Origin: Wallemia ichthyophaga EXF-994
Lineage: Eukaryota > Fungi > Basidiomycota
DNA length: 32,000 nt
NCBI RefSeq assembly: GCF_000400465.1
Contig: NW_008806299.1
Location: forward strand, 1 to 32,000
Reading direction: 5' to 3'
Made by a program: the position numbers and the translations under genes. Positions 1,890 through 27,425 of this stretch are shown piece after piece. Each line of letters opens with the position of its first letter. Position 1 is the stretch's first letter. The notes beneath the pieces were generated by a model. The model saw only the letters and a program-made list of their open reading frames with translations, ran no database searches and had not been told where the DNA came from.

Positions 1890-3223
1890 ATGGCCAAGCG
1901 GCAAAGCAATACGAGCTCTTTTGAGCGAAGTTTAAAGCCCAAGCTCGGCAGTGGCTATAAGTTTGCAAGCCATCTGCCCAGAGATATGCGCGCAAAAGCA
2001 CCGTGAGGATCTTATCTTTGGGGAAGAAATCTAGCTTATCGAGCAACAATGCAGCGCCTACACTGTCGATATAAGGCAGCATGCAGAGAACGCTCGCGTA
2101 TGCTCCTTCAAAGAAAAAGGTGCGTCTATCCGCCCACTCCAATTCGGTACTCACAGAACGTTTGATAGTCGATAGGAGACCGATAGATCCTCCGCCAATC
2201 ATACAACTCTATACAGACGAAGTGGATAAGAGGTCCGTGATTTTTGAGATCAACATGAATTGGATCCGCTGACGCCCACTCTAGCGAGTTTCTGCAATCA
2301 ACGTCATTATTTATGACAGCAACTCTTATAAATCCACATGGCAGCCTCGAAGAAGTTTACAGCCAAAGAAACGTTCGGGCCACCGCCGGAATCACCGTCC
2401 AAACTCCTACGAAGCTCAAAGATGAGCATGGCAAGGGTAAGGATAGTATGACTTACGAGCATAGCCTAAAAGGACTGACTAATTCCACTTCGTAGACGGT
2501 TCATTCTGTATTTGGAATCACATATCTGTGCGGCAAGAAGGACACTTCAAACTCCACTTCAGACTCTTCGAAAGGCGTAATCTTGACGTCATAGAAGTCG
2601 CCAGCGCAATATCAAATGTGTTCACAGTTCACAATCCAAAGAACTTTCCTGGAATGTCAGAGTCTAGCTACTTGACTAGATGCCTCGCCAGTCAGGGCGT
2701 TAGGATAAGAGTGAGAAACGAAAATAAAGCGATACGCAATAGGATTTATGAGCATGAGAGCGAAAGTACCTCTCTTGCACCATCAACGTCAACAATGTCA
2801 ACATCATCTGCATCTTCTTCGAAAACCCATCGTGTACAAAAGCAGCAACCTACTAGCAAAATTCAACAAACATCACATCCTATAGTTCCACTTGGATCAT
2901 TGGCCACTATGCCATTTTTTCCAACTCCCCTACATGAAAGCCATATAAGCCAATTTGACCGGATACCCTTCACTAACCCAAATGTCGGTTTCAAAAGCTC
3001 AAGCACTGAAAGCGACAGGAAGTCACAAATATCGCAGCTGCCACGACCATTACCGCCTGGAAGAACTATCTCTGCAAATGTGGATCCGTTGAACTCGGTT
3101 AGTCAATTAAATCAACAGCATCAGCAGCAGAGCAAGGCTAGCATTGATTATCTCCTTGATGCCGCTCGGACGTTAAATGATGATGAAGAGAGGGAGGACA
3201 GAGCCAGACGATTTCAGCTATAG
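1890..3223 (+). CDS. Velvet-domain regulator (VosA-like), about 373 aa, 5 exons
   Basis: ATG in caccaccATGG context. GT-AG introns at 2003-2054, 2120-2168, 2233-2284 and 2437-2495 give an intact 1122-nt frame. Velvet motifs: YTVDIRQHAENARVCSFKEKVDRRPIDPPPIIQL, LKDEHGKDGSFCIWNHISVRQEGHFKLHFRLFE, SNVFTVHNPKNFPGMSESSYLTRCLASQGVRIRVR. The VosA subclass is a recalled resemblance only. Confidence 0.92.
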
Positions 3224-3297: not shown

Positions 3298-4498
3298 TCA
3301 AATAATCTGGGATACGTTGAAGAAGCAGCTTGCTTGATCATGATTCGTTTGCTGTTTGTTAAATAATGCTTCTATGTCTGCAAATAGATCTGAGGCGTCG
3401 TTAACGTTAACGTCGGTTGGTGAATATTCAAGCGCGGATATAGCTATGTTCAAATCTCGTGGACTGTTGAGGTACTCAGACTGGCTGCTAGGATAGATGC
3501 TTGGAGGGCTGCCGAGTGGGCTTTCCCAGAAACCTGGTTGGTATGGCAGGGGGCTAGAGGGCAAAGAATCGAGTATTGGCAGTGTATCATTAGCAATTGG
3601 CGTGGTAGTGAGCAAGTGCGTTAGCATCGTTGGCGGTATTGGTGTAACAGGGGGATTGTAGACGACGTTGGGATTGTATAACGGTTTCTTTACGGTCAAA
3701 ACGTCACTCTGTGCACGCGAATGCATAGCTTCATTGCGAGGTCTGCCACGGCATCTACTCTCGCTCCTCTTCTTGCGTGGTGGAGGTGGTGGAGCTGCCG
3801 AATTAATGGCATCTTTTTGGGGTTTGGCCAGTTTGTGACGTTTCAGAGGATGGCGGAGTTGGCGCGGTCGACCGGCTTTACGTGGCTGGTATTTGTAGTC
3901 GGGCCACAGTGTCCTGTGCATCCTCTTCTCATCTTTTGCTAGCTCAGTGAACTTCTCTTTGACTTCCTCGGCCTCTTTCTGCCACAGGTCGGACACAGTT
4001 GCTGAGATTGCACGCGAATCTGGTCTGTTGGTGGGTTGCGATACAGCTGCTTCTCTCAACTCTTTGCTTTTGTGTGAGCGATAGATTATCCAGGCGCTGA
4101 CATGTATTAGACAAGGTTGTCAGCGCATTGTCTACTCACTTGCGTGGACGTGGTATTGCTGGTTTTGGATGCTTAGGGTCTTTGAGAGTACGTCTTATTC
4201 TTTTCTTTTGGCTGCATTGAGGTGCTATCTGGTTCTGAATATGCTGGAATTTGTCGAGTAGACGTTGATGATGATCTGCGTTACACTGCTTCCCCTCGTT
4301 CTCATTCTTATTCTTGTTCTTATTCTCATTCACGTTCTCATCCTCATACTCATGGTTGTATTCATGGTCATACTCATTGTCCCTCTCCATTTCGCCCTCC
4401 TTTACTTCCATATAAAAGAGGTCGTCCAGCATGTTGTACTCCCCTTTGTAATCATGTTTGCCGTCTTGTAATAGTTTCTCTAATAGCGTTTGTTTCAT
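3298..4498 (-). CDS. MATA/SOX-type HMG-box transcription factor, about 385 aa, 2 exons
   Basis: Intron 4097-4139 (GTGAGT...CAG) joins IPRPRN to AWIIYRSHK...ISATVSDLWQKEAEEVKEKFTELAKDEKRMHRTLWPDYKYQPRK, a sequence-specific HMG box. It has an acidic/Asn-rich N-terminus, a PPPPPRKKR NLS-like segment and a Pro/Ser-rich C-terminus. Confidence 0.92.
4298..4378. repeat. Degenerate 6-bp coding microsatellite encoding the E/N/K/H/Y low-complexity tract of the HMG protein
   Basis: TTCTCA/TTCTTA/TTCTTG/TACTCA-like units on the + strand encode NEYDHEYNHEYEDENVNENKNKNKNENE on the - strand. Confidence 0.8.
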
Positions 4499-6681: not shown

Positions 6682-7402
6682 ATGTTCCCAAACTCGATAA
6701 ATTCCCTAAGCCATCTCCCTATACAAACAATGCAGCCGATAAAAGACGAAGTGAATGTCTTTGAGGAGTCTTGGAAGGAGCATAACATGAACAATTTCAA
6801 CCAGCTTTATCCCCACCAAGTTGATCTGCAAGGTGAGTTTGTTAGTGGGACTGATTCACACTGATCTAATTAGTGTGGCAACAGCAACGCCTCACACGTT
6901 GAATATCTCGAATATCTCGCAAATTAAGCCTGAAACAATTATACCACAAACGCAGCCTAACGCTACACAGCCCCTCACACGCCTACAAGCCGCCACACAA
7001 TCGCAGCCCTCGTCATACACTGATAGCGCGAGCAGCGAACGCAGCAGCCCGACCAAGAAGTCTCGCAGAACATCGCACAACTTGGATAACAACGACATTC
7101 CGCCACTGATGAAGCCTGTTGGCCGACGCGGAGATATAAGCCTTCAGTTCGGCGAGGATGGTCGCGAATTGAGCAAGGAGGAGCGCAGGAAAATTACAAT
7201 GGATAGGAACAAGAGTGCTGCAGCTCGCTGTCGTCAGCGCAAGCGCCAGTGGACTCTCAATCTCCAAGAAGAGGTAGATATGCTTTACACGGAGCAGCAG
7301 GCATTGAAAGACGAGAGGCAGCTGCTGAAAAATGAAATAGATGATCTGAGAAAGACAGTAGCTGAGCTGACTAGCTACGCGCTTGAACGAGGACATAGCT
7401 AG
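6682..7402 (+). CDS. ATF/CREB (Atf1/AtfA-like) bZIP transcription factor A, about 222 aa, 2 exons
   Basis: Intron 6833-6884 (GTGAGT...CAG) gives a 669-nt frame. Basic region DRNKSAAARCRQRKRQW is followed by a leucine zipper. N-terminal KDEVNVFEESW resembles the Atf1 OSA motif EPNPFEQSF. Confidence 0.88.
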
Positions 7403-7614: not shown

Positions 7615-8342
7615 ATGGAAGAGGTTGTCAGTACGGGAGAGCCTAATCCTGACAGCGATATCTGCCGCAATGGTGATATCTACTTTGGCGCCTATAATGA
7701 ATACAACGATAAGAATCCAAAATCTTGGTACGGCACGTTGGCCGGGTTTGAGGGTGGAGAGATTAACGCTGACAATTTCAGAGCACCTGATGAATTCGGT
7801 TTTCCCGCTTTGAACTTTAACTTTCTGAATGTTGATGACAAATCACATCCGAGCGCTGAGACTTCCAACACGGCTACAGCCTCCTCAGAAACGAATGAAG
7901 CTTTATCAAACACTGTAGTCATCCCAAAAACATTCGATCTCGCTGTCCCACCTACCACCGCCAGCAAACCATGGCAAAAGATTCCCGATGCACCACCACT
8001 GATGAAGCCGGTAGTGGGTGGAATGATTGTACTTTGCCGCCGCTGACGCATTTCAAGGGCAGGGTCGGCGATAAGTCTTTGCGCGTCAACGCCGACGGCG
8101 TTAAACTGAGCACGGAGGAACGCAAATCTCTTGCTCTCGAACGCAACCGTAGCGCGGCTCTGCGCAGCCGAACGCGAAAAAAATTATGGCTCACCGAGCT
8201 AGAAACCAAGGTCGAGACACTCACAGCCGAACAAGATAAACTTAAGTCAGAGCGCAGTGCTCTTCAGGAAAAAATTGTCAAGCTTAAAGAAGAGATGATT
8301 GAACTCAAAGAGGAGCTACTACGAAGCCGAGGACAGTTCTAG
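7615..8342 (+). CDS. bZIP transcription factor B, paralog of A, about 227 aa, 2 exons (start codon uncertain)
   Basis: Intron 8014-8057 (GTGGGT...CTGAC...AAG) joins PPLMKPV to GRVGDKSL. Basic region ERNRSAALRSRTRKKLW is followed by a long zipper. First in-frame ATG is at 7615. Confidence 0.85.
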
Positions 8343-8763
8343 TCAGGCTGTTGCTGATCTCTAGTATGTTTTACCTTTCCCCACTCGCCTACACCGACGA
8401 TTTTATACTTATTCTTCTCATGATTGGCATTGTTTAGATTTTTCTGTCAGGTCTCGCATTATAACTACTGAGTATCGCAGTTGTATTATTTAAACATTGG
8501 CGTGGAAAACCGTAATTTTAGCCGGGTGTAAGTGTGATGAGTGTTATGAGTGTGGCAAGTCTTGTGAGCACGGCAAGGACAGGCTTCTGTGATTATTAAG
8601 TCACGCTCACATTACGCTGTATCAAGATGGTCTGCAACTGACCAAGCCATGCATTCGTTTGATAATATGATCAAATCTTAGTTTCGTTCAATGCTCACTT
8701 TCAAGCAGAAATAGGATTTAAAAGTATTATATATCTTTCAAAATCACATCGGAGATCTTCCAA

Positions 8764-8780
8764 CGGAGTCTGTTACTCCG
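8764..8780. promoter_or_regulatory. Gal4-type CGG-N11-CCG site (CGGAGTCTGTTACTCCG) upstream of the alpha-galactosidase
   Basis: Exact 11-nt spacer with 6-bp palindromic arms CGGAGT/ACTCCG, ending 167 bp before the ATG. An extra CGGAG half-site lies at 8750. Function is inferred. Confidence 0.6.
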
Positions 8781-8947
8781 GGCTCCTTGGAGGAGTTCCA
8801 GGGCCACTATCAGATCTGATCTGATGACGTATAGTGAATAAACCAAACTTGCATAAATGAATATTGGTATCACATGCTGCTGTATATTTATTATTCAAGC
8901 CCATACCACATCTCTTGCTTTAGATCATCTTCATTCCAAACATCCAA

Positions 8948-10295
8948 ATGTATCGTACACTCACAAGGACAGCCATAGTAGGCCTCTTAGGCTCAGCAGC
9001 GGCCTTGAATAATGGCGTGGCCATAACGCCCCAGATGGGCTGGAACAGGTTCGTGCTTCTAGCCTCCTCACCACCAACATACTCTTACACAAAGCACAAA
9101 ACACAGCTGGAACACATTCGCATGCGATATAGATCAGGATGTTATTCTCCAGTCTGCCCAGAAACTAGTCGATCTCGGCCTCAGGGATCTCGGATACAAT
9201 TACGTCGGCATAGATGACTGCTGGCAAGCCGACGCTAGAGATCCCGACACAAACAAGCTTAGTTACAACATGGACAAATTCCCAGACGGAATCAAGAGCG
9301 TAGCTGACCAAATCCACGCGCAAGAGATGAAAGTTGGGATCTATTCTTCCGCGGGGACGCAGACTTGTGGTCAGAATCCAGCATCGCTCGGATATGAGAC
9401 GGAAGACGCGACGAGCTACGCGGATTGGGGGATAGATCTGCTGAAGTACGACAATTGCTTCAACCAGGGACAAGCAGGCAATCAGAAACTGAGCTACGAT
9501 AGATACAACGCCATGTCACAGGCACTCAATGCCACTGGTCGTCCCATTGTCTACGCAATGTGCAACTGGGGAGAAGATTCCCCTTGGAAATTCGCACCGA
9601 CAATTGCAAATTCCTGGAGAACTACAGGTGATATCACTGACAAATTCACGGGGGAAGACGCGCGCTGTCCTTGCAAGGGTGATGAAGGTCTCGATTGCCC
9701 ATTGGCAGGGTACCACTGCTCTGTTACAAATATCCTCGAGAAATCAGCATCATTGGGACAGAAAGCTCATACTGGCGCTTGGAATGACCTCGATAGTCTG
9801 GAAGTAGGTGTTGGAAACCTTACAGTTACACAATCCAAATCACACTTCACCATGTGGGCATTCATGAAGTCGCCTCTAATGATTGGCGCTAATCTGGACA
9901 CCATCGATGATGAAAGCCTGGAAATTCTAAGAAACAAGGCCGTGATCGATGTGAATCAAGATAAATTCGGCAGCACCGCACGCAGAGTGTGGAAGCGTCA
10001 AGTTGGTGATGGCGACCTGCAGCTTTGGTTGGCGGCGTTGTCAGGCGATGTGTATGCTATTGCTGTGCTCAACACTTCCTCTCAACAACAGTCTACTGCT
10101 GTGCGCTTCGATGAGGTGTTCAGAGGTATCGACTATGAGGACAGTGACAGGCAAGGTACATACAACCTCATCGACATGTGGCAAAAAGACGGAGATGCCT
10201 GGGGCTTAGGTGTAGGCAATGCGACCGGCACTTTAGAAGATGTCCAAGTTGAGCCATTCGGTGTTATGGCCTATAGATTGACAAAGAGCGCATGA
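8948..10295 (+). CDS. aglB: Secreted GH27 alpha-galactosidase (melibiase), about 429 aa, 2 exons
   Basis: Signal peptide, TPQMGWN|SWN across intron 9049-9106, GYNYVGIDDCW, KVGIYSSAG, LKYDNC (nucleophile Asp), WRTTGDI (acid/base Asp), WNDLDSLEVG and SPLMIG. The CPCKGDEGLDC insertion is recalled from AglB-type enzymes. Confidence 0.95.
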
Positions 10296-10436
10296 GATAA
10301 TGTACCTATGTCCAACACCCAACCTATCCTATTACAGCCAATTTTATATCCAGTCAACGCATGACGCCAAAATTTCCTGTGATTTAAAAATTTCATGATT
10401 TTCTTATCGGCGCGACGATTACACTCTTCCATAACA

Positions 10437-12797
10437 ATGGAGAGAAATGCGGGGCATGAAGTGGAGAGGGAAAGACCAACGAGAGCGTGTGAGCTGAGCG
10501 TGAAGGGGTAATATTCCAATGCTTATGCAACTCCCCAGGTGATGGTTGCAGGTAAGCAGAGACTCTTATCTCAGCGCTGATCCTCACGATTTCCAGAAAG
10601 AAGAAGATCAAGTGGGCTCTGCCATTTCCGGTGATCTCCGCTGACAGTTTCTAGGTGCAATGGCCCTGTTAAATTCCCGGAGATTTGCAGCAATTGCAAG
10701 ACGTTCCACCTGGAGTGCTCATACAACGATCCAGCACCAAAGCGAGGATTCACAGTGGCCTACGTGCGCGAATTAGAACGCAAGGTGAGCTTTTATATCG
10801 CTTGTGCATCGCCGTCTCTCACGCTTTATAAGGTGTCGCTATACGAGGCATTAGTGGAGAGATTGGCGCCAGGGCGAAATTTGCACGAGGATGTGGAGAG
10901 TGTGGCGAGCACCACGGCTATTATGCCACCCAAGCGGAGACGGGTGGATTCGGACTCCGGTTTGAGTTCGTCCCTTGCAAGCACTCAGCTGGACACACCG
11001 TCCACTTCTTCCCTCCCGCAAAACCCTTCAAAAATAGGTCATGAAGATGACGAATTAGAGCATCCCAGCGACTCGGACGACGACAGTGGTCTTCACGAAG
11101 AACAGGAACACCGCTACTTCAGAGGTGTGAAGGGCATACTCAAGACGCTTAAGTCTTATTCTGCAGGCCCGTCTACACCCCCGCTTTCCACCCAGCAGAG
11201 ACCTGAATATTGGAGTCCGCACAAGCATCTCGAGGAAGACAGCTACATCGATCCATACTCAAATGAGGATTTTGGAGACGAGAGGCTGTACATGCTGCTG
11301 GTGGAGATATACTTCGAGAAAGTCAACAGCACTCTTCCGCTCCTCAACAAGAAGCGCTTTGTGGCAGAAGTGCGGCACAGGAAGCTGGAGAGAAAGTTCG
11401 CTAGCATACTTATACTCGTGTGTGCACTAGGTGCGCTCTACTGCGATGACCCCAGAGTTCTGAATCAGCCTGAACGATTTAGATTCTTGTCGGGAAGTAG
11501 CTTCCTCGCTACGTACAAAAGGAAATCACCCGATTACAGCTTGTCGGCTGCCACGCTGGAGGACATACAGGCACTCATTTTGCTTCAGATGTTCGTGCAG
11601 CGCTCTGCGCATCTCAAGAGCAGCTGGAACTTGAACGGTGCGGCGCTCGTCATTGCCGAGGACATGGGCCTGCACATGCAGCAGACGGACCTCGGAGATA
11701 ACGAGAGAGAAGCTCGCAATCGCGCTTTCTATTGCATATACCTCTTTGATAGGTCGCTTAGTGCAGCGTACGGCAGACGCATCCTCTTTAAGGACGAAAA
11801 TCTCAACCTGGAACTCCCCAAGCTGCTGCCGGAAGAGTGTGGAGCTGAAGAGGAGTACAGCGTGCTTTATTTTAATCACATGGTTAAGCTGTACAACATC
11901 CAGGGACAAATTACTCAGTCGCTGCACTCACTCAAAAACGCTAACGAGAAGGAGGATATCACCAAGGTCGTCGCGTGCATGAGTTCGAATTTGAATCGAT
12001 GGCTAGAGGACGTACCTGAAAAACTTAGGTATAAGGATGAGTGTACGAATGAACTCGTCTTTCAGCTGATGGGCAATCTTCGCATTGCATTTTTTAACAT
12101 ACAGATATTCATGTACAAGAACTTCGTTCCCCACCCGCACACGAAGAAGGTATCGAGATTCAAAATGCAGAGTTTGATGATATGCGCAAATGCTGCGCGT
12201 TCGCTACTCAGTATCTTCAACATCATGGAGCTGAAGAGATCTATCGTACAGAACTACATTGACGTAATGTTGAACTTGAGCGTGGGTGTATAGATCTACG
12301 GGATAAATAATTCTAACGACACTGCAAAGCCATTTAACGCTGTCGTCATACTGATACTCAGCGCATGTGAAAGCAGAAGATGCGGTCAAGATGACCAGAA
12401 CTCAGACCTCGAGTACATTGAAACAGGTGTGAATGTTCTGCGCAGGAGGGAATTTAGAGACATAGTAGCAGGAAAATCACTCGACGTTGTCTTGCACCTT
12501 ATAGAAGCATGCCAATTGCCGGTCGACACGACATCGAAAAGACGGCGGAGCAACGATATGCATTTTGCATGGCTCAAACCGATGACCGATATGAATAGCG
12601 TAGACAGCACGTCAGCATTGGATGATAGCGGCACGGAGCGGGATGACCAGCTGCTCCTAACGAACATGTTCAATCTTATGCAATCAAATCCAATAGACAG
12701 CACCTTCGATAGCACGTTCAATGACCTTGTCACACCCACGGACAATGCAGATCTCGAATGGAACGATTTTCTGACGTCGGTCTTTCAGAATCAGTGA
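10437..12797 (+). CDS. Zn(II)2Cys6 (Gal4-like) transcription factor with fungal middle homology region, about 708 aa, 6 exons
   Basis: Introns at 10489-10538, 10552-10596, 10612-10654, 10785-10832 and 12282-12329 give ACDGCRKKKIKCNGPVKFPEICSNCKTFHLEC and a 2127-nt frame. MHR motifs: YFEKVNSTLPLLNKKRF, EDMGLH, RNRAFYCIYLFDRSLSAAYGR. Confidence 0.93.
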
Positions 12798-12830
12798 TTC
12801 TTAAATTTAATAACAAAACGTACAAAGCTT

Positions 12831-12850
12831 ATAGATATAGATATAGATAT
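12831..12850. repeat. (ATAGAT)3+ microsatellite in the 115-bp convergent gap between the Zn cluster and LEA genes
   Basis: Read directly. TA-rich elements of this kind often act in fungal 3'-end formation. Confidence 0.8.
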
Positions 12851-12912
12851 GTAGAAAAGTGTATTTGATTTAAATACTTGAATTTCCTTTGCATCTCAAA
12901 TCTCTAGTGCAA

Positions 12913-13338
12913 TTACTGGGTCTTGTTCTTGACCTCGTTTGCGGCATCTGAAACCTTACCGGCGGCTTTGTTTGTGAGATCTTGAGCTTTGTCTTTGGTG
13001 CTTGAGGCTGCGTCTTCGACGTGCGGCTTAAGTTGTTCTGCAGTCTTAGTGGAGGCTTGCTTCGCCGCTGTGGCATTGCCTTGGACTTGCTCAGTTGCAC
13101 CCTCAGCGCCCTGCTTGGTTTGGTCGGCCAATTCGCTCCCTTTAGCAGATGTCCTGTCTCCTGCTGCCTTGGCGCCGTCTTTCATTGCCTCTGCTTGCTC
13201 AGCGGCTTTCTGCTTTTCGTCCTTGCCGAATACAGCTTGCTTCACATTGTCTGTTACAGAGAGGCGGGAAGTCGAGGTGGTGAAGGCTCTTGGCTTGCAT
13301 GCGCTGGTAAACTGTCTGGTAAATTGTCTAATGAACAT
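12913..13338 (-). CDS. LEA-like hydrophilin with predicted mitochondrial presequence, 141 aa
   Basis: N-terminus MFIRQFTRQFTSACKPRAFTTSTSRLS is Arg/Thr/Ser-rich with no acidic residues. The remainder is A/K/Q/E/T/D-rich, lacks W/Y/C and has group-3 LEA-like 11-mers (TKDKAQDLTNK, AAGKVSDAANE). Confidence 0.75.
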   Translation of the reverse strand: MFIRQFTRQFTSACKPRAFTTSTSRLSVTDNVKQAVFGKDEKQKAAEQAEAMKDGAKAAGDRTSAKGSELADQTKQGAEGATEQVQGNATAAKQASTKTAEQLKPHVEDAASSTKDKAQDLTNKAAGKVSDAANEVKNKTQ

Positions 13339-13402
13339 TTTTTTCGAAGTGTCAATTCAACTTGCTAATTGGTGTATTAAATATTTTTTGGTGTAATCCA
13401 TT

Positions 13403-13767
13403 ATGACGTTTTGTGTGACGACTTATATTCTTGTTTTGGATTTCTGCCTGATGTAAGAGTAGAAGGTGTTTGCTTTTTCGATTGGTGCAATAAATTTGCT
13501 TTCCCGTCCGTCGCTTAATCGCTTTCCGTGCGTTGAATTAAAGCAAATCCGCGCACTTACACTCCCCCCATTTTACTCCAAAAGCCCTTTACATCGGCAC
13601 AGATGTCTCTCTTAGTTTTCGCCTTTTAAATTCATTTGTAACATTAATTTACGCGCCCCTTGCATCTTGAAACATCATCCGTCTTTCTCAAGCCCCTCAT
13701 TCCACATAATACCTCCCCAACGTGGACTGTAACGAAAGGTCAGTGCTGAGAGCTCCTTAAGTATAAA
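13403..13767. promoter_or_regulatory. Divergent promoter with CRE/M26-like ATGACGT (13403-13409), two STRE CCCCT (13656, 13693) and TATAAA (13762-13767)
   Basis: Motifs read directly between the LEA-like ATG (13338, -) and the secreted protein ATG (13833, +). They are short, so function is inferred. Confidence 0.45.
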
Positions 13768-17347: not shown

Positions 17348-20300
17348 TCACTGGAGGTCTCGTAAAAAACCACCCTTCTCGAAACTCTCAGTTGAGTTTT
17401 CGCTGTATATGCCGTTGACATATTTATCCTTGTCAATCAAACCTGCAATCAATCTGTTGTTCAACAAGTCAAAGTTGATTGGCTTGGTGAAGAAGGCTGA
17501 TGAGTAAATTAGTTAAGGCAACATCCATCAGCTATCAACTCACCATCAAATCCACACTCTATCAATGCGTCGTGATCATTTGGTGATATAGATGCAGATA
17601 CTGCAAAAATTGGTATTCTTTTGTTAATGCGATGCCAATTACGGCCTTTAACTTTTCCGGCTTTCTCCGCTTGTCTTATGCTTTCGCATGAATTGTAACC
17701 GTCCTTTATGGGCATCATGAGATCCATCAAGACCACATCAAAGCCTTTTTCGTCGTTTATTACAGCTTCTGCACCTGCTTCACCATTGTTTGCCAGCTCA
17801 ACTGTGCAGCTGTCACCCTTGGATAGCTTCTTCTTCAGTATATTGCGATTGATTGGATCATCGTCAATATAGATCACTCTGGCTGGAATTTCTGGTATAA
17901 CATTGTCATCCTCATGCACTTCTTCGTGCTCCTTATCTTCCATTATCACATCACTCTTGCTATTAACAGTTTCGGTATCTGCCACCCTCAAGCCCTCGAT
18001 ACCCTCACTGACTGAATGTATATCGTTTTGCGGTATGGAAGTTGAACGTCCAGGAGCAGCCTTGATTGGAAAAGCGCTATCTTGAACTTGAAATCTACCT
18101 TTTCTTGAACGCCTCTTAGCTTTTGTGCTACTGCTTCCGCTGTCACCACTGCTACTGGCACTCTTGCTTCCGCCAATACTTTGGTCAGAATCACCAGGGC
18201 GTGCCCTTTGTGGAATTTTTTGTGCAGTGGATGATTCAGAATTCTTTGTCAGACCGGATCCTGAAGACGATGGTGCTAAGGCTTCAACAAACGAGTCAAG
18301 CTCACTTCTTTGTTGTAAGTCTTTTCCAATCGTTTGAACTTCATCACTTGTGACAGTATCCCCTTCTGTTTGAGGAGCTTTGTTTCGGTATTTGATTCGC
18401 ACTGAACGCTCAGAGAGATCAGAGCTACCAGGGTTTGAAGCACTCTAGAAATGATGTTAGATAAGAATATCACCTAGATCCATCTACCCACCTCTAAAGT
18501 CGCCTTATCTGGTAGATTAAAAGGAAGAATTGCTGTGAATACGCTACCTTTTCCAGGCTCGGATGAACACTTCAACTGTCCGTCAAGTTGCTCTATGGCT
18601 CTAGCACACGATGCCAAACCGAGTCCCAAATTAATATCGGATCCATCACTGCCTCCGCTTTCTGTTAATTGAAAATCAACCTTTTCGAATCCTGTAAACA
18701 AAGCTTCAAGCTTTTGCTTTTTTATGCCGACACCTTCGTCTTGAACAGTGAGTGCAATGTTTGCTCTATTAGACTCCTTATCTAGTTCATTGAGGCCGAC
18801 GAAAATATTACCGCCATCTTTATTGTATTTTACTGCATTGCTTATGAGAGATGTCAATATGGTACGAAGCTGTAGCATGTTAGCATTGCTTGTTCTAACA
18901 AGTTATCACCCGCCTTTCTATGATCGCTAATGACATGAGAGTGAATATGCTTGACATTCACTTTGAGATTGAGACTACGTCTCTCCACTTCTTGTTTAAA
19001 TTCCTGCACAGTTTCAGAAACAAGATGTTTCAAGTGAACTGGCTCATTGAAAAGCACCTCCTGACCAGAATCAACCTTTGTAAGATCAAGTAGATCATTG
19101 ATTGTGAATAACAAACTCTTTGATGCATCTCTGCTGCGTGTCAAGTTTTCTCTCGTTTCGTTGTCAAGATTGCCTTCCAATGCCAATTCAACGTAATTTA
19201 TTATGTGATTGAGAGGAGTTCTGACTTCATGTGAGGCATTCGATAGCAAAATACGAGACAGGTGACTGGTTTTGCTGAGTTCAGTCTTTTGCCTCCATAT
19301 CTCGATAAATTTACCATAAACAACCGCAAGTACACCTGCAGTCTCGAGCTGCTCGTCTTCCCATTGCTTCGCGGACATCATAACCTCTTCTGTCCACTTT
19401 TTAAAGCTTGCTCTTGGTTGTAAAGAAATATTCTTGTTCTTATTAGGATTTCCTGCCCATGACACTGACGACATTTCACCTCTTCTCAAGAAGCAGATAA
19501 AGTCTTCAGTAGTTTTAGAAAGGGGTATGTAAAGTAATCCAGCTATAGATCCGATTGAGCTGCTTGCCTCTAGTTCAGGAAAGTTTTTGTTTATGTTGTT
19601 TGTATAAATCATTTGCTCAAATCTTTGCATTCGCAAAAACTCTCCAATTGCTATAACTTCTCTACTACGATTCATATCGCCTAGAATTTTCATTGTGTCT
19701 CCAATAGACAAAAGCCCATAATCCGCATCAAAGACACTAAGTAAATCAAGTGCTGTAGATGCTATGTAACCACCAGGGTGAGTTTCTGATGGAACTGTGG
19801 ATATCAACTTTCTTGATTGAAGTCGGCGTGTGTATGCCAGCCTCTCTACGTTACGTGAAATAGAGTCTGAAAGTAGCTTGAGAACTTGCAACATTGGGAA
19901 TGTTACACGCATTCCATTATCACCGCTACTATGACACGCTACCAGACCGTAAAGCTGACCAAATACTACTATACTGATTGAGAGTGAGGCTCTGACATTC
20001 ATGTTTCCGAGATATTTGATGTGTATTGGCGACATTGCTCGAAGAGAACAATTGGACATATCTAAAGGATATGCTAAATCTATACCATCGCGAACGACCA
20101 TTCTTGCAGTAAGCTTATCTCTATCGTATAACTGACGAACTTTGTTTCTCTTGTAGAGATCGCGCGCTTGTGCGGGGATGTCAGATGAAGGAAAGTTTAA
20201 GCCATGATAGAGATCCTTCATCCTTTGCCAGTCAACTAGTTCGGCGACAACCTTGCCGTTGTACTCAGGGTCAAATTGATACAACATTATTCTGTGAAAC

Positions 20301-22369
20301 TGAGTCAAATCCTTGACCATACCAACAGTGACATCGAAAAGCTGTTGGACATCATTAACGGAGCTAAGCTGCTCATTTATCTCTCCCAACAAGCCAACAA
20401 TATCTAATGATGACAGACTACCTGGCATATTCATGCTTCTTTGAACTTTCGATCTAGCTTGTGCACGTCTATGTGACTTTCGACGCTTCTCGGCTGCTTC
20501 TTCATCCTCATTTGCTTGATTAGCGTTTTCAAGTAAGGTTGCGACCCTTTGACGTGTTTCGTGAGTACGTTCGGCCTTTCTTATTCTCGCAAGAGTTTTA
20601 AGCGGCCTGTGATATGGAGTTGTGCTACGACGAATATCTTCAATAGAAACATCGTCGTTACCGTGAGATGCATCAACTGCTTCATTTGTCATGCGCGTTT
20701 GCTGACGATGTCTTTTTTCATCTTTAAATTTATTGCCTTCACCTGGCACTGCATGTACGGTTTCACTAGATTGCGTGGTCCCAGTATTGCCACCTTTCCC
20801 AGAATTAGAGGTCAAAGCCGCAGTCGTAGAGCCCGTATCATGGGTAACACCGGATGATGGATTTTTTCCGCTTGAGCTAAGATTGAGATCTAAAGACTCG
20901 GCTGGTTTTGCGTCTCTGGCATCAAATTCTTTCGGTAATTTGGAAACTTCATCTACATATGCAGGGTATTTGAGCGATACGATCGGTTCAAACTCTAATA
21001 TGTAAAATCCTTGTCTGCCAAACACCTCTTCAGGAGGTGGATAGTGTTTATTGAGAGGTGGTGGTAGTTCTGGTTTGTGAACAGCACTATCAAATTCGTA
21101 AGATTGTAATAAGAGCTTGGGTACCATACTCACCACCAACAAGTCCAGACCTTGTTATGATTACTTTCGTCAGAGAAAGCACTGTCGCTGTACTGATCTT
21201 GTAAGTTAATATCCCCACGGCCACTGACAGCAAACACTTGAGCTTTGTCTTTTTCAAAAACCCCAGAACTATCGGATCCGGAATCATCCACAACAGCCAA
21301 ATCGAAGAGAATGTCTCTCATTTTTAATCTGCTGTCATTGTCGAGGATGTTGGTAAAACAATTTAGGGAGAAGAGGAATTCTGGCGAACAGCCAATAATG
21401 TCAGGACAATTTTCTGATGCTTGACGGACGATGGAGTTGCCATTGTCGTCATTTTGTAGCACAATCATAGCTCCGAATGGCTGAATTGCACCAGGCCTAC
21501 TGATTGGTTCGTCCTCACACTTTTTCATCTTTGAGTTGTGGTGTGTGATCAAGTAGAATTCACCGTTCTCTTCGTAATATTGGAATCGCCTCGTAGTTGG
21601 TAGAGGTGATTCTTCATCCGCCAATGAATTAATGGATGATTCACCTTCACTTTGATCAATTGGAATTTCATTTATAGGAATTGATGGTTTATTGAGATTA
21701 TTTGCTTTAGATAGCTTATCTTTGTGTATGTCCATTGCTTCCGCTGCAGTAGAAGGTTGTTTCTGAAACATATGTAAATATTAAGCAGCTTGACTATTTA
21801 TAACTCACCCTAGTACCATCCTCATCGCTTCTGCTGCCAGAAGAGTTCGAATCTCCCATATCTTCCATTTTAGTGGCAATGTGGTCACGCTCACGCATTT
21901 CCTCTTCTTCCTTAGTGGGACCTGCGCTATCATCAGCACCATTAGAAAGACTTGTGCTTGATAATTGAGCCTGCATTTCCTCATCTTCTGGCAAAGGCTG
22001 ATTCGGATCATTGAGATGAACATTTCTGTCAATACCCCTTGGGACCGACCTCGGCTGGCTAACTGAGGAGCTGACTTTCTCATTTTCAGCTTTGCGTCTA
22101 TCGAAATTTGCGTGATTTGCAGTTGGTGAAGTTGGCTGCTGGGTTGGAGCGCAGTCGTTTTTGCTCTCCTCTTGGATGAAATCCTTGCTCGTATTGTTAC
22201 TGTCGCTGGCAATGCTCGATTGAAGATCCCAGTCCTGCTCACCTCGCGCTGAGCTAGCTTCGGCGTCAGCGTGAGATGCACTGGGCGCAGAGCTTAGAGA
22301 CAACGTCGAAGTAGTTCTATTAAAGACGCTGCGTACGGGAAATACGAATTCCCCTTCGCTATCGCCCAT
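17348..22369 (-). CDS. fphA: Fungal phytochrome 1 (NTE-PAS-GAF-PHY-HisKA-HATPase-REC), about 1596 aa, 6 exons
   Basis: Motifs: KCEDEPISRPGAIQPFG (bilin Cys, codon 21517-21519), FPSSDIPAQARDLY, LRAMSPIHIKYL, ACH, WAGNP, PRASFKKW, SHEVRTPL, SNAVKY, DEGVGI, GLGLA, DDDPIN/MDLMMP/KP receiver. Introns at 21763-21808, 21087-21133, 18870-18913 (GC-AG), 18445-18491 and 17497-17543 give a 4791-nt frame. Confidence 0.95.
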
Positions 22370-22838: not shown

Positions 22839-25800
22839 CTAACCAATGAGACCACCACGTTCGAATCTCTTTCCTTCTTTATACTGGAATTTAGATACGT
22901 CTTCCTCTTTACTAAGCGCGTTGACAATCTCGATAAGCGTTGCAAAATGCAGTGGCTTGAGGAAAAATCCATTGAAACCCTGTTCTTTCAAAGTCGGCAG
23001 GTCATTTTGAGTGATTGAGGCAGAGAAGGCAAAAACCGGTAATGGCCCATTCTGGCTCTTAGTCCTGAAAGACCTGCCTTCCTTCTCCATGCTGCGAATT
23101 TTGCCCACACATTCTTTGCCGTCACAAACTGGCATCATTAAGTCCAACAGCATCACGTCAAATCCGGTATTCTCTCCACTCAGCTGGTCGAGCGCTTCTT
23201 GGCCGTTATCAGTAAGTACGACGTTCATTTCTTTTAGTCTTCTTGCTATTATTCTATTATTGATAGGATCATCGTCGCAAGCCAGTAGACGAGTTTGGGT
23301 GGGGCCCTCCTTAATAGTGAGGTTGTCCTTTATTTCCTTCGCTAAGTCTTGAGGCTCACCATGCTCGCTCGGTTCTGGTGCATAATCTATCACTTTGGCT
23401 CCTTCCGCTTTCGACTCACTCATGGCACTCTCTGAGTCATTGGTCTGATTTATCTGAGACATCGACGGCTTATGCCTGGCTTTTAAACTCTTACGTTGTG
23501 CAGACGGTTTGCTTGATGCGTCGCTCAAAGACTGTGTGTTAGAGTTGGTGAGATCCTCAATATCGCTCTGGCTCGCCAAGCTGAGCGGGATAGTGACGTG
23601 CCATTTCGTATATTCACCTAAAAGCTGTTAAACGAATTGTTTGGAGATACCAACACTTACCTCTCCGAGATGAACAAGTCATCTTCGCTTGTAACAGAGA
23701 AACAGCTTTGGCGACCTGCACCAAGCCCCTTCCAAAAGAGTTGCCCTCGGAGCTGTCATGTGTCGATACTGACTCAGTTTGCTCACTACCTGTCCCACTA
23801 GTATTCTCAAGCTTTTCAAATCCATGAAACATCTCCTTTAAGCGTCTTTGCGAAATACCGGTACCAGTGTCATGAACTGTAAGCATTATAGCTGAGGTGT
23901 TGTTTTGATCAGTCTCATGCTCAGATATGGACGTCAACTTGATATACACTTTGCCTTTTTCGTGATTATATTTGATGGCATTTTCGAGAAGATTTTTGAC
24001 TATTAGACGGATCTGAGGGGAGTGAGTTAGTGTTAATGAAAAACAACAAAACACAAACCTTTCTATTATCAGAAACTATGAATGGATTTTCTATTTGACT
24101 TGTTTCTATTTCGATCGATATATTCCGGCTGATCATTTCCTGTTTGAACATCTCAACACAATCGAGGACATTGCTAACGATATTCATAGCGCTCTTGACT
24201 GGCGCATTCTCTTCCGATTGAGTGGTGAGCGATATGAGATCATTGACTGCATAGAGCATGCTCTGAGCACTAGATTTAGTCTTTTTGAGATTCTTGCGCG
24301 TTTCTTTATCAAACACACCCTCCTTCTTCTCCAACGCCATATCCAAATAGCTGCAAAAATGATGCAGAGGTGTACGCAGCTCATGCTCAAAGTCTTTGTC
24401 TACATTGGTCATTAACAGATCAGACAGCTTAGATCTTGTACTCTGACGATTACGTCCAAGCACCTTTGAGTAGACGGCTGAGAGGACAGATGCACTTTCA
24501 AGCTCTTCCGGCCGCCATTCTCTTGCAGTACTGGTGACAGATTCTGTCCACTTTTTGAAGCTAGCTCTGGGTTGAAGGGGTGTACTACCCACAGTCTTTT
24601 CACTCGGATTACCAGCCCATGAAATATTTTCCAATTGACCACTGCGTATGAACGCAATGAAGTGATCACCAGGCGCTTCCTTAGAATTGTCATTGAGTGG
24701 GACATATAGCAATCCCGATAAGTTCTGTTCGTTGTTTATCTCTATATTAGGATATTCCCGCTTCAGTCTTGTTGTGTATCGAATATCTTTCCACTTCTTC
24801 TGCTTGAGGTACTTTCCAATTTGCTTAATGTCATCGTAATACTCATCATTACCAATGATTTTCATCTTGCCATTGTAGCAGATAATTAAATTCTCACTAT
24901 CGAAGAGGCGAAGTAGATCAATGTCTTTATTTGACGAGATACTTCCACTCATTGTGTCATTTGGATTCATCAGAATGCTTCGTCCCATGAGACGTTTTCT
25001 ATATATTGCATTATCCATATTTCTAGATATCATATCAGAAAACATCTGTGAAGCTTTGTTAGGTTGTTTGAGTCGGGCAATGAACTAAACTCACCTTCAG
25101 TAGTTGCATTTGAGGGAATGAAACTCTCATCTCCTTCTCGAAAGAGTGACACGATACCAAACCAAAGAGATTGCTACTATTAGGACGCTGCGTGACAACA
25201 CTGATTGACAGGGATGACCTGACATTCATATTTTTTAAATAGCGAATATGTATTGGCGACATAGCTCTAAGAGCACAGCCGCTCATATTTAGTGGATATT
25301 TCAAGTCATTTTTGTTTCTGACAACCACCTGACTAATCTTTGCATCTCGATCAAAAAGTTGCCTAACTTTGCTGTGTTTATAAAGCTCTCTAGCTTGAGC
25401 GGGAATATCAGAGGCAGGGAAATGTAGCCCATGAAAAATTTCATTGCAGCGCTGCCAGTTCATGAGTTCACTCTCAACCTTTCCATTGGCTTCGCTGTCA
25501 AACTTATACAACAGCACTCTGTCAAAATTGGTAATATCCTTTGTAAGACCTACGATGACATCGTAGAGGTCTTCAATCGACTTCTCTGCTGCTTCAGCAA
25601 GTTGGGAATCAATCTCTTGACAAAGACTCAAAACATCTAGTGAGCTAATTCCATCTGGATTGTTGATGTGTCTTCTTATTTTTGCGCTCAAATGTTCGCG
25701 ATCCATCTCCTCTTCTCGTATGGCACGTTTAGAGTCGTCTAGCGTTTCCAATTGCCTTCTCTCCTTTTCAAGCTTCTCCAAGAACAACTTGTTAGTCCTT

Positions 25801-27425
25801 TGTGATCTTTGCAGTATCCTGAGTGGCTTAGATTTACTGATAGTAGACCGGCGAATTTCAAGCAGAGTAGCATAGCTGTCCTGTCCCAAACTCCAATAAG
25901 GCTCGTCGTAGTAGTCTGGATTTTGCTCATCTGCGTTATTTGTTTTGACGTCAGTGACTTCCTGCATGTTATTAGGTTTAACAGTGTCATTTGTGCTGTT
26001 CGTGTTTGACTGAATCGTATGATCAACAGAGCCGTTATTCCTGATAGTGTCTTCAGCAGAATTGCTGCTTTGCTTGAACAAGTTAATGGGATATAACGGG
26101 TGGATATCCTTGTCAAAAATTCTAGGTATCTCAGCGTTACTCATTTTTGCCTTAGCGGCTGGATCATAAATCGGTTCAAATTCGAGAATAATTCGACGAC
26201 CACCTTGATCTTGACTGTTATGATGAACGGGTTCTTCACCTAGTTCATTTTCCATATCGTTAACAGCTGCGGTAGTGGTAGCTTTCTGCGCTGCACACCA
26301 ACACCACCATTCTCGGCTACCCTCGATGCCTTCCTTCCCTACACCTGACAAGGAGAACGTGTGTATCGCTTCTCTATCTCTCTTGTCTCCGTCCAATTCG
26401 ATTAGCTCGATAATAACATCATGCAGCTTAGACGCGCTTTCGGCACTGAGAATATCGGTCAAACAGTTAAGCTTGAAGAGATTGCGCACTGAAGTACCAA
26501 GATGTACATTGACGTTCTCTGACGCTTGCATGACGCGCAACTCATCATCATACAATTCAACCACAAGCAAGCATCCAAAGCTTTGTATGGCACCAGGTGT
26601 TGCAATGGGTTCATCTTCACATGTGTGGATCTGATTATCACCGACTTGGATATAGAATCCGTCTTGGGCTTCCTTGAGTGAGAATGCTGGGAATTTCGGT
26701 AAAGCGGTGTCAGATGATGTATTATTGGTTGTCTCTTCTCTTGATGGTTTACTAAAAATATCTACTGTGCTATACTGATCATCAGCGGAATCTTCCTTAT
26801 CCTTCTGACGATTATATTGTATGTGTGATTCCATAGCTTCAGCGGCGGTACTGGTGCGATATTTAAAAAATTCATTGGACTGACTAGCATCTTGGACTGC
26901 CTCATCCTTTTCTTTGCCTCTTTTGGCATCTTCACCTGACATACTCAAACCGCTACTGACAGCATCGTTTTCGCGCTGGGTTTCCTCATCCAAAGTTGGG
27001 CCATCTTCACCAGAATCAGCGTTGGTGGTGGAGATGGAATCGACTGATCTGTCATCAGCGGAAGATGGTGTCCTTTCGTCTGTACGTAGTTAGTCATCAT
27101 TTTTGCGCCGATAGCACCACAAACCTGGTAAGGGGAGATTTGGATCATCGGTGGCTACATGCTGCTCCAATCTCTGTGGAGCGGTATTGGATTGAGGCTG
27201 CTGGCTCGAATACACCTCATCTCTAGGATTTGTAGGCCGTCTGCTGTAGACGAACTCTCCAGATGAAGAGGGCGAATATGCTGGTCGCTGGGCTTTGTCA
27301 GTGTGTTTATGGGAGCCTTCTGATGCTAAATCCTGGGCTTCGTTGCCTTCTTGGGCTTGTTGATCCTTAGCCACTTCCTGCTGCGACGATCGCCTAGACT
27401 TCTGTGGGAAGCTGAATTCAGTCAT
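22839..27425 (-). CDS. Fungal phytochrome 2, tandem paralog, about 1467 aa, 5 exons
   Basis: Motifs: TCEDEPIATPGAIQSFG (Cys codon 26619-26621), FPASDIPAQARELY, LRAMSPIHIRYL, SCH, WAGNP, PRASFKKW, EHELRTPL, ENAIKY, DTGTGI, DDDPIN/LDLMMP/KP receiver. Introns at 27080-27124, 25046-25094, 24013-24058 and 23618-23660 give a 4404-nt frame. Confidence 0.95.

Follow-up and report, generated by a model that had tools for sequence, protein, structure and literature searches.

An alpha-galactosidase gene, an adjoining zinc-cluster factor gene and a CGGAG palindrome form a possible regulatory module in Wallemia ichthyophaga

Scaffold KE007249.1 belongs to the assembly (GCA_000400465.1) of Wallemia ichthyophaga EXF-994, a halophilic basidiomycete of the class Wallemiomycetes. 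Its first 32 kb, hereafter the window, carry a MEL1-type GH27 alpha-galactosidase gene, which is followed by the gene for a Zn2Cys6 and Fungal_trans factor, here termed TF-A, and preceded by a perfect 17-bp palindrome with CGGAG half-sites. It is plausible, but unproven, that this local zinc-cluster activator drives the adjoining alpha-galactosidase gene through the palindrome, a proposal founded on sequence comparisons between related loci. A sequence-only reading of the window had already assembled these components into a local enzyme-plus-regulator module modelled on Gal4. The enzyme, the factor, their spacing, the site and the adjacency all proved real; the 17-mer was conserved only in part, and the factor is not a Gal4 orthologue. 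The components are the following:

8764-8780, + strand (palindrome): the 17-mer CGGAGTCTGTTACTCCG, CGG-N11-CCG, equivalent to CGGAG-N7-CTCCG
8948-10295, + strand: the GH27 alpha-galactosidase gene, exons 8948-9048 and 9107-10295, 429 amino acids
10296-10436, + strand: the intergenic spacer of 141 bp, from the stop codon of the enzyme to the ATG of TF-A
10437-12797, + strand: TF-A, the Zn2Cys6 and Fungal_trans factor, 702 amino acids encoded by six exons (10437-10488, 10539-10551, 10597-10611, 10655-10784, 10833-12263 and 12330-12797)
10486-10877, + strand: the zinc cluster, linker and coiled-coil start of TF-A, with the pattern C-X2-C-X6-C-X9-C-X2-C-X6-C, 14 residues, then YVRELERKVSLYEALVERLAP

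The enzyme was 100% identical to the NCBI entry 'Alpha-galactosidase [Wallemia ichthyophaga EXF-994]', matched the Pfam families Melibiase_2 (PF16499, 4.2e-60) and Melibiase_C (PF17801, 4.4e-8), the latter corresponding to a C-terminal beta-sandwich, and had as its closest solved structures alpha-galactosidase I of Umbelopsis vinacea (3a5v, 3.5e-120) and Mel1 of Saccharomyces cerevisiae (3lrk, 4.5e-119). Its LKYDNC and SWRTTGD motifs aligned with the equivalent motifs of 3a5v; we take the catalytic aspartates of GH27 enzymes to be a nucleophile within KYDNC, and an acid/base within the R-x-x-GD segment (RTTGD in this case). The hydrophobic N-terminus suggests that the enzyme is secreted.

The TF-A gene includes micro-exons of 13 nt and 15 nt, as well as a 48-nt in-frame intron (10785-10832). 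This model agrees with the annotated W. hederae protein P0150, and restores all six cysteines, such that the spliced gene encodes C-DG-C-RKKKIK-C-NGPVKFPEI-C-SN-C-KTFHLE-C-SYNDPAPKRGFTVAYVRELERKVSLYEALVERLAP. Pfam searches recovered both Zn_clus (PF00172, 4.2e-10) and Fungal_trans (PF04082, the middle homology domain, 4.5e-27), and the C-terminus of the protein is acidic (…DNADLEWNDFLTSVFQNQ). One deposited W. ichthyophaga model (P0121) leaves out the 13-nt micro-exon, which encodes CDGCR, including the first two cysteines, and keeps the 48-nt intron. In W. hederae and W. mellicola, the enzyme and factor were fused by annotators into single gene models (TIA87304.1, or P0150, and E3Q10_03650, or P0122, of 1165 and 1112 amino acids respectively) because their spacing is so tight, the spacer being 97 bp in W. 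mellicola. Better annotation of these fused models, and of P0121, is a by-product of this work. Several elements of the sequence-only reading were precise: the perfect CGG-N11-CCG lies on the + strand at the very coordinates it had been assigned (8764-8780); the gene that this site precedes is of the GH27 family, as the Pfam and structural matches attest; the next gene begins exactly 141 bp downstream (ATG at 10437); and the TF-A peptide that had been quoted is correct, once the 48-nt intron is removed.

The 17-mer is a perfect 6-5-6 inverted repeat with 6-bp arms (CGGAGT-N5-ACTCCG), located 184 bp upstream of the alpha-galactosidase ATG (8948), and approximately 120 bp 5' of the TATA-like element TATATTTATTA, which is a position typical of an upstream activating site. 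The bare CGG-N11-CCG pattern was not enriched in the window, with four copies relative to 1.85 expected (10 of 100 shuffles reached four), and the other three copies fell within coding sequence, none being placed in a promoter. Perfect 6-5-6 palindromes of any sequence numbered 14 in the window. It is the palindromic extension and promoter position that make the 17-mer notable, rather than the bare pattern. When its location in a promoter is combined with the CGG ends and the 6-bp arms, the value is approximately 1e-3 for the alpha-galactosidase promoter, calculated for a site chosen post hoc.

A second member of the same protein family, encoded outside the window, bears directly on this proposal. 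TF-B (P0123) is a paralogue 49% identical to TF-A, and in W. ichthyophaga (locus L007) it adjoins genes for a GFO_IDH_MocA oxidoreductase and a sugar transporter, an arrangement that recurs in L008, L009 (with the addition of a hexokinase gene) and L099, the loci together representing four Wallemia-like species. Across these four loci, totalling 32 kb, there were four perfect copies of CGGAG-N4-CTCCG, where dinucleotide shuffles predicted 0.006, and two further copies with one mismatch. The perfect and one-mismatch sites are:

L007: 6570-6583 and 4034-4047
L008: 6676-6689
L009: 3418-3431 and 9047-9060
L099: 4578-4591

All of the perfect palindromes were upstream of transporter, oxidoreductase or hexokinase genes. 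No copy of CGGAG-N4-CTCCG was found in 114 kb of other loci, and no CGGAG inverted-repeat spacing other than N4, among N0 to N15, was found in the TF-B loci. These palindromes are a good phylogenetic footprint for a candidate local TF-B regulon, better supported than the module in the window, and the family comprising TF-A and TF-B probably acts on the genes beside it via CGGAG inverted repeats. Since the CGGAG half-site is common to the TF-B loci and the 17-mer, the prior likelihood that TF-A is a sugar regulator of its own neighbour is raised. A third group of paralogues (P0130 and P0129; loci L015-L017) had neither sugar genes nor a perfect CGGAG palindrome.

We infer a mechanism that joins binding, dimerisation, activation and an inducer. 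TF-A is a Wallemia-specific Zn2Cys6/Fungal_trans factor and would belong to a small family of sugar-catabolism regulators, each of which would control the genes beside it by binding inverted CGGAG half-sites as a homodimer. The CGGAG-N7-CTCCG palindrome at 8764-8780 would be the upstream activating site in W. ichthyophaga, with a weakened form present in the sister lineage L001, and through it TF-A, or a close paralogue, would induce the enzyme on alpha-galactosides. It is also possible that one transcript spans the enzyme gene, the 97-141 bp spacer and TF-A, in which case the module would have built-in positive feedback.

Orthologous loci were compared across four Wallemia lineages, namely W. 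ichthyophaga, its sister lineage L001 (in which the alpha-galactosidase is 82% identical to that of W. ichthyophaga), W. hederae (L098) and W. mellicola (L005 and L006). A second W. ichthyophaga strain (L003) had an alpha-galactosidase promoter identical to that of the window. The outgroup was an AT-rich lineage assembled from ENA metagenome contigs (L002 and L011-L014), which is present in many metagenome samples; a scan of JGI metagenome contigs for additional Wallemia-like loci found only relatives that were at most 54% identical. The 17-mer and its counterparts in the four lineages were:

W. ichthyophaga: CGGAGTCTGTTACTCCG, a perfect palindrome
L001: CGGTGTCTTCTACCCCG at the aligned position, with both CGG/CCG triplets kept and 13/17 positions identical
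W. hederae: CTGCCACCGCTACCCCG at the orthologous position, with the left half-site destroyed and the left CGG lost
W. mellicola: nothing comparable, with CGG-N11-CCG and CGGAG both absent from the promoter

The form in L001 keeps CGGnGT-N5-ACnCCG, its four substitutions affecting either the central 5 bp, or the mirror-image fourth positions of the two half-sites. The proposed link between the 17-mer and the enzyme is probably restricted to the W. ichthyophaga/L001 lineage, rather than ancestral.

Multiple aspects of these comparisons weigh against control of the enzyme by TF-A through the 17-mer. The 13/17 identity between W. ichthyophaga and L001 places the site only within the top 20% of 17-column windows of a promoter that is 64% identical overall. 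No CGG-N11-CCG was present anywhere in the 10-kb W. hederae locus, in which the left half-site of the 17-mer is gone, while in W. mellicola both CGG-N11-CCG and CGGAG were absent from the promoter, which has two CGG and one CCG across its 523 bp, and from the enzyme-factor spacer. Where the 17-mer has been lost, TF-A has hardly altered in its zinc cluster, linker and coiled-coil, with the region following the cluster reading YN[DQE]PAPKRGFTV[AGS]YVRELE[RQ]K[VI][SA]LYEALVE[RK]LAPGRNL across the four lineages, and hence altered specificity cannot account for the loss. The palindromes in the TF-B loci were kept across four species, unlike the 17-mer, and therefore the evidence from TF-B cuts both ways, as evidently functional sites are conserved within the genus. 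The alpha-galactosidase and TF-A genes are adjacent and co-oriented in all four Wallemia lineages, which supports the pairing proposed by the sequence-only reading, whereas the 17-mer half-lost by W. hederae and missing from W. mellicola means the site is in part not conserved in orthologous promoters, an outcome that the same reading had regarded as contradicting its module. However, the pair is conserved no more strongly than an entire syntenic block of at least 20 kb, in which velvet, HMG-box, bZIP, alpha-galactosidase, TF, small, 4HBT and phytochrome genes follow one another, and approximately three-quarters of the W. ichthyophaga genome is coding (PMC3849046). Hence conserved adjacency alone is weak evidence, because the whole block is syntenic within so compact a genome. 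A literature search found neither binding data nor expression data on alpha-galactosides for this locus, and nothing on Wallemia alpha-galactosidase, melibiose use or TF-A.

Outside the genus, the outgroup enzyme is approximately 70% identical to that of Wallemia, and has divergent histone H4/H3 genes after it where Wallemia has TF-A; its promoter (approximately 25% GC) contained no CGG at all. Across the four Wallemia alpha-galactosidase promoters and enzyme-factor spacers, nothing was shared among other CGG spacings, whether inverted, everted or direct, from N0 to N20. An everted CCG-N11-CGG in W. mellicola (L005, 7539-7555) was treated as a chance occurrence, with no counterpart in other species.

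The promoter of the alpha-galactosidase gene contains other elements that are more or less widely retained:

8750-8757, + strand: an upstream CGGAG half-site, CGGAGATC, in which CGGAGA is conserved
8791-8800, + strand: the conserved block AGGAGTTCCA, 10/10 identical between W. ichthyophaga and L001
8824-8830, + strand: ATGACGT, a CRE/ATF-like bZIP half-site found in four Wallemia promoters
8864-8882, + strand: the conserved TTGGTATCACATGCTGCTG block, with the E-box-like ATCACATG inside it; W. ichthyophaga and L001 agree at 19/19 positions
8883-8893, + strand: TATATTTATTA, a putative TATA-like element as read from the sequence

The upstream half-site is CGGAGATC in both W. ichthyophaga and L001, CGGAGAAG in W. 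hederae, and absent from W. mellicola. At the position of AGGAGTTCCA, W. hederae has AGGAACTCC, the core of which, GGAACTCC, is the reverse complement of GGAGTTCC. Both the CGGAGA half-site at 8750 and the block AGGAGTTCCA are retained within the ichthyophaga/hederae group. All four Wallemia promoters have ATGACGT at 112-135 bp upstream of the ATG, and its equivalent in the AT-rich outgroup is TGACGTCA, 225 bp upstream. Similarly, W. ichthyophaga, L001 and W. mellicola have ATCACRTG at 79-89 bp upstream of the start codon; in W. mellicola, ATCACGTG is at the same distance as TTGGTATCACATGCTGCTG, approximately 80 bp from the ATG. The sequences aligned with the TATA-like TATATTTATTA are TATTTAAG (L001) and TATATAAG (W. 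mellicola). The most widely kept of these elements are ATGACGT and ATCACRTG, and it is there that deeply conserved promoter logic would appear to lie.

Nearly as likely as regulation of the enzyme by TF-A through the palindrome is that the adjacency represents passive synteny in a compact genome, with the 17-mer being lineage-specific, and either non-functional or differently used. The enzyme would then be controlled via ATGACGT, as a bZIP/ATF-type site, and ATCACRTG, as a bHLH-type site, with the upstream bZIP proteins being possible regulators, and the targets of TF-A being elsewhere. This would account for the persistence of ATGACGT in every Wallemia promoter, and of its equivalent in the outgroup, the retention of ATCACRTG in three lineages, the bZIP genes directly upstream in every Wallemia locus, the synteny of the whole block, and a 17-mer that is absent or broken in two of the four lineages despite an unchanged DNA-binding region in TF-A. 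However, a 6- or 7-mer may persist by chance over short promoters, and the neighbouring bZIP proteins have no specific tie to the ATGACGT site. It also leaves unexplained why a perfect 6-5-6 CGGAG palindrome should be found beside a factor with a paralogue that has conserved CGGAG palindromes at its own loci. An explanation in terms of repression is unlikely, but arises because the conserved part of the 17-mer would be its right half, (C/T)CCG(G/C), which overlaps a match to SYGGRG, as read on the opposite strand, in three lineages. This half would be the site of a CreA/Mig1-type C2H2 repressor mediating glucose repression, with the left half being incidental. Mig1/CreA glucose repression of alpha-galactosidase genes is established in ascomycetes, and the SYGGRG matches are all 172-188 bp upstream of the ATG, as CCGGAG in W. 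ichthyophaga, CCGGGG in L001, and the classic core GCGGGG in W. hederae. Yet SYGGRG is very degenerate, being expected approximately once per 256 bp when both strands are considered, and was found nowhere in the W. mellicola or outgroup promoter.

Most improbable of all is a true Gal4/Lac9-type GAL regulon, in which TF-A would be functionally equivalent to Gal4, bind CGG-N11-CCG genome-wide, and control Leloir genes in addition to the alpha-galactosidase. In its favour, the best solved matches to the DNA-binding region of TF-A found with HMMER were Lac9 (1cld, 1e-7) and Gal4 (3coq and 7uik, 6e-6), aligned with no gap after the last cysteine, as the sequence-only reading had maintained for Gal4; and the 17-mer both fits CGG-N11-CCG, and matches the classical synthetic Gal4 17-mer CGGAGTACTGTCCTCCG, the use of which as a Gal4 upstream activating site was confirmed, at 12/17 positions. 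However, these alignments covered only query residues 15-87, and the full-length search with TF-A returned 29 proteins, all either from Wallemia or weak matches (at most 31% identity), with neither Gal4 nor Lac9 among them; only Wallemia proteins exceeded 35%, and the nearest matches from outside the genus were 23-28% identical over most of their length. Furthermore, the Cys3-Cys4 loop has nine residues, compared with six in Gal4, the 17-mer was not conserved in two congeners, no Leloir genes were present in the window or the other sequences available, and the other three copies of CGG-N11-CCG were not in promoters. Judged by this comparison, TF-A is not an orthologue of Gal4 or Lac9, the similarity being confined to the DNA-binding domain of approximately 70 residues. 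Gal4 serves as an analogy, and not as a family assignment; the full-length search found nothing Gal4-like.

The spacing of the half-sites cannot be deduced from linker length. Ppr1 (1pyi, 1.8e-4) likewise aligned to TF-A gap-free after the last cysteine, and shared seven linker identities with it (DPA, YV and LE), compared with five for Gal4. Ppr1 binds CGG-N6-CCG, with a 6-bp spacer, whereas the spacer of Gal4 is 11 bp; Marmorstein and Harrison reportedly found in 1994 that the linker of Ppr1 folds back, resulting in the 6-bp spacer. The structures behind spacer recognition by Ppr1 and Gal4 are cited in PMC6265462. The inference that a Gal4-length linker implies N11 was consequently rejected, as linker length cannot predict spacing when Ppr1 aligns as Gal4 does. 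The same conclusion is reached within the family, because the TF-B of L009 has 14 residues between its last cysteine and YV, as does TF-A, yet its locus carries N4 sites (CGG-N8-CCG), leaving linker length alone uninformative. The argument of the sequence-only reading that the linker sets the spacing thus fails as a predictor, and a shortcut is corrected: a linker equal in length to that of Gal4 does not predict an 11-bp spacer.

The resemblance of the locus to Gal4 and MEL1 is by analogy only. Like Gal4 of S. cerevisiae and Lac9 of K. lactis, TF-A is a Zn2Cys6 protein in which the first loop contains KK, and which has both a linker and a coiled-coil; a palindromic CGG-N11-CCG is found upstream of a MEL1-type GH27 alpha-galactosidase in both settings. 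The analysis yielded no evidence of Gal80/Gal3-type control or of Leloir-gene targets, no search for a Gal80 homologue having been made. However, GAL4 is not adjacent to MEL1 in yeast, whereas the enzyme and factor are adjacent in Wallemia, where the 17-mer is evolutionarily labile within the genus. The number of residues from the last cysteine to the YVxxLE coiled-coil start is equal in TF-A and Ppr1, but the CGG-N6-CCG recognised by Ppr1 was absent from every alpha-galactosidase promoter examined. Viewed through other such comparisons, the locus would be an instance of a common and already well-known fungal arrangement, in which a pathway-specific zinc-cluster activator is found beside its target gene. 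As at the S. cerevisiae MAL loci, where MALx3 is beside the maltase and permease genes, and at A. nidulans alcR-alcA, a Zn2Cys6 gene adjoins a gene for a catabolic enzyme, the promoter of which has CGG-type repeats, and TF-B repeats the arrangement with a transporter, an oxidoreductase and a hexokinase. The Wallemia genes differ in that their family is basidiomycete (Wallemiomycetes) and shows no detectable orthology to those activators, and in the absence of the candidate binding site from two congeners. GalX and GalR of Aspergillus, and other ascomycete sugar regulators, are likewise Zn2Cys6 regulators of galactose or plant-sugar use. The ascomycete plant-sugar regulators have no known basidiomycete orthologues, and hence lineage-specific factors are to be expected in basidiomycetes (PMC3998117).

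Other features of the window surround the gene pair. Just downstream of a bZIP stop codon, an element of approximately 80 nt (8424-8505) was approximately 97% identical between W. ichthyophaga and L001, relative to a promoter background of 64%, and could also be recognised in W. hederae and W. mellicola. It had no Rfam match, as was the case for the whole of 8000-13500 at E <= 1, and its candidacy as a structured RNA was rejected (z = -0.86, with negligible covariation); it may be a regulatory element of the 3' untranslated region. The tandem bZIP genes directly upstream of the alpha-galactosidase (6682-7402 and 7615-8342, both + strand) encode proteins that each contain a PPLMKPV motif, and were annotated as one two-bZIP gene in strain L003; the neighbouring promoter has the CRE-like ATGACGT. 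Downstream of TF-A, 12913-13338 (- strand) encodes an Ala/Lys/Gln-rich protein of 141 amino acids, with weak YtxH and apolipoprotein-like matches, that resembles an LEA-type stress protein, and this gene was kept in the same place in all Wallemia loci. Further along, 17348-22369 and 22839-27425 (both - strand) are tandem genes for fungal phytochrome-type hybrid histidine kinases with the architecture PAS_2-GAF-PHY-HisKA-HATPase-response regulator. With these kinases, the velvet gene (1890-3223) and an HMG-box gene (3298-4498, - strand), this end of the scaffold has an unusual wealth of light and development regulators, a block that is syntenic in W. mellicola.

A broader, and more doubtful, generalisation of local regulation by TF-A is that there is a Wallemia-specific family of Zn2Cys6 factors, each encoded beside its own sugar-catabolic targets, and all recognising inverted CGGAG half-sites, with the spacer set by a second zinc loop and linker specific to each paralogue. 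Under this proposal, the spacing would be N4 for the module of transporter, oxidoreductase and hexokinase genes, and N7 for the alpha-galactosidase module. To our knowledge, sugar-specific transcriptional regulators are almost unknown in basidiomycetes, and a regulator-plus-target module with a readable binding site would be an experimental entry point. The TF-B module, with its conserved CGGAG-N4-CTCCG, looks to be the stronger starting point, with the alpha-galactosidase module as a variant that differs in spacing. If the family does operate in this manner, an early-branching class of basidiomycetes would have its first defined sugar-specific zinc-cluster regulons, and TF-A and TF-B would be a natural pair of paralogues in which to follow the evolution of half-site spacing specificity.

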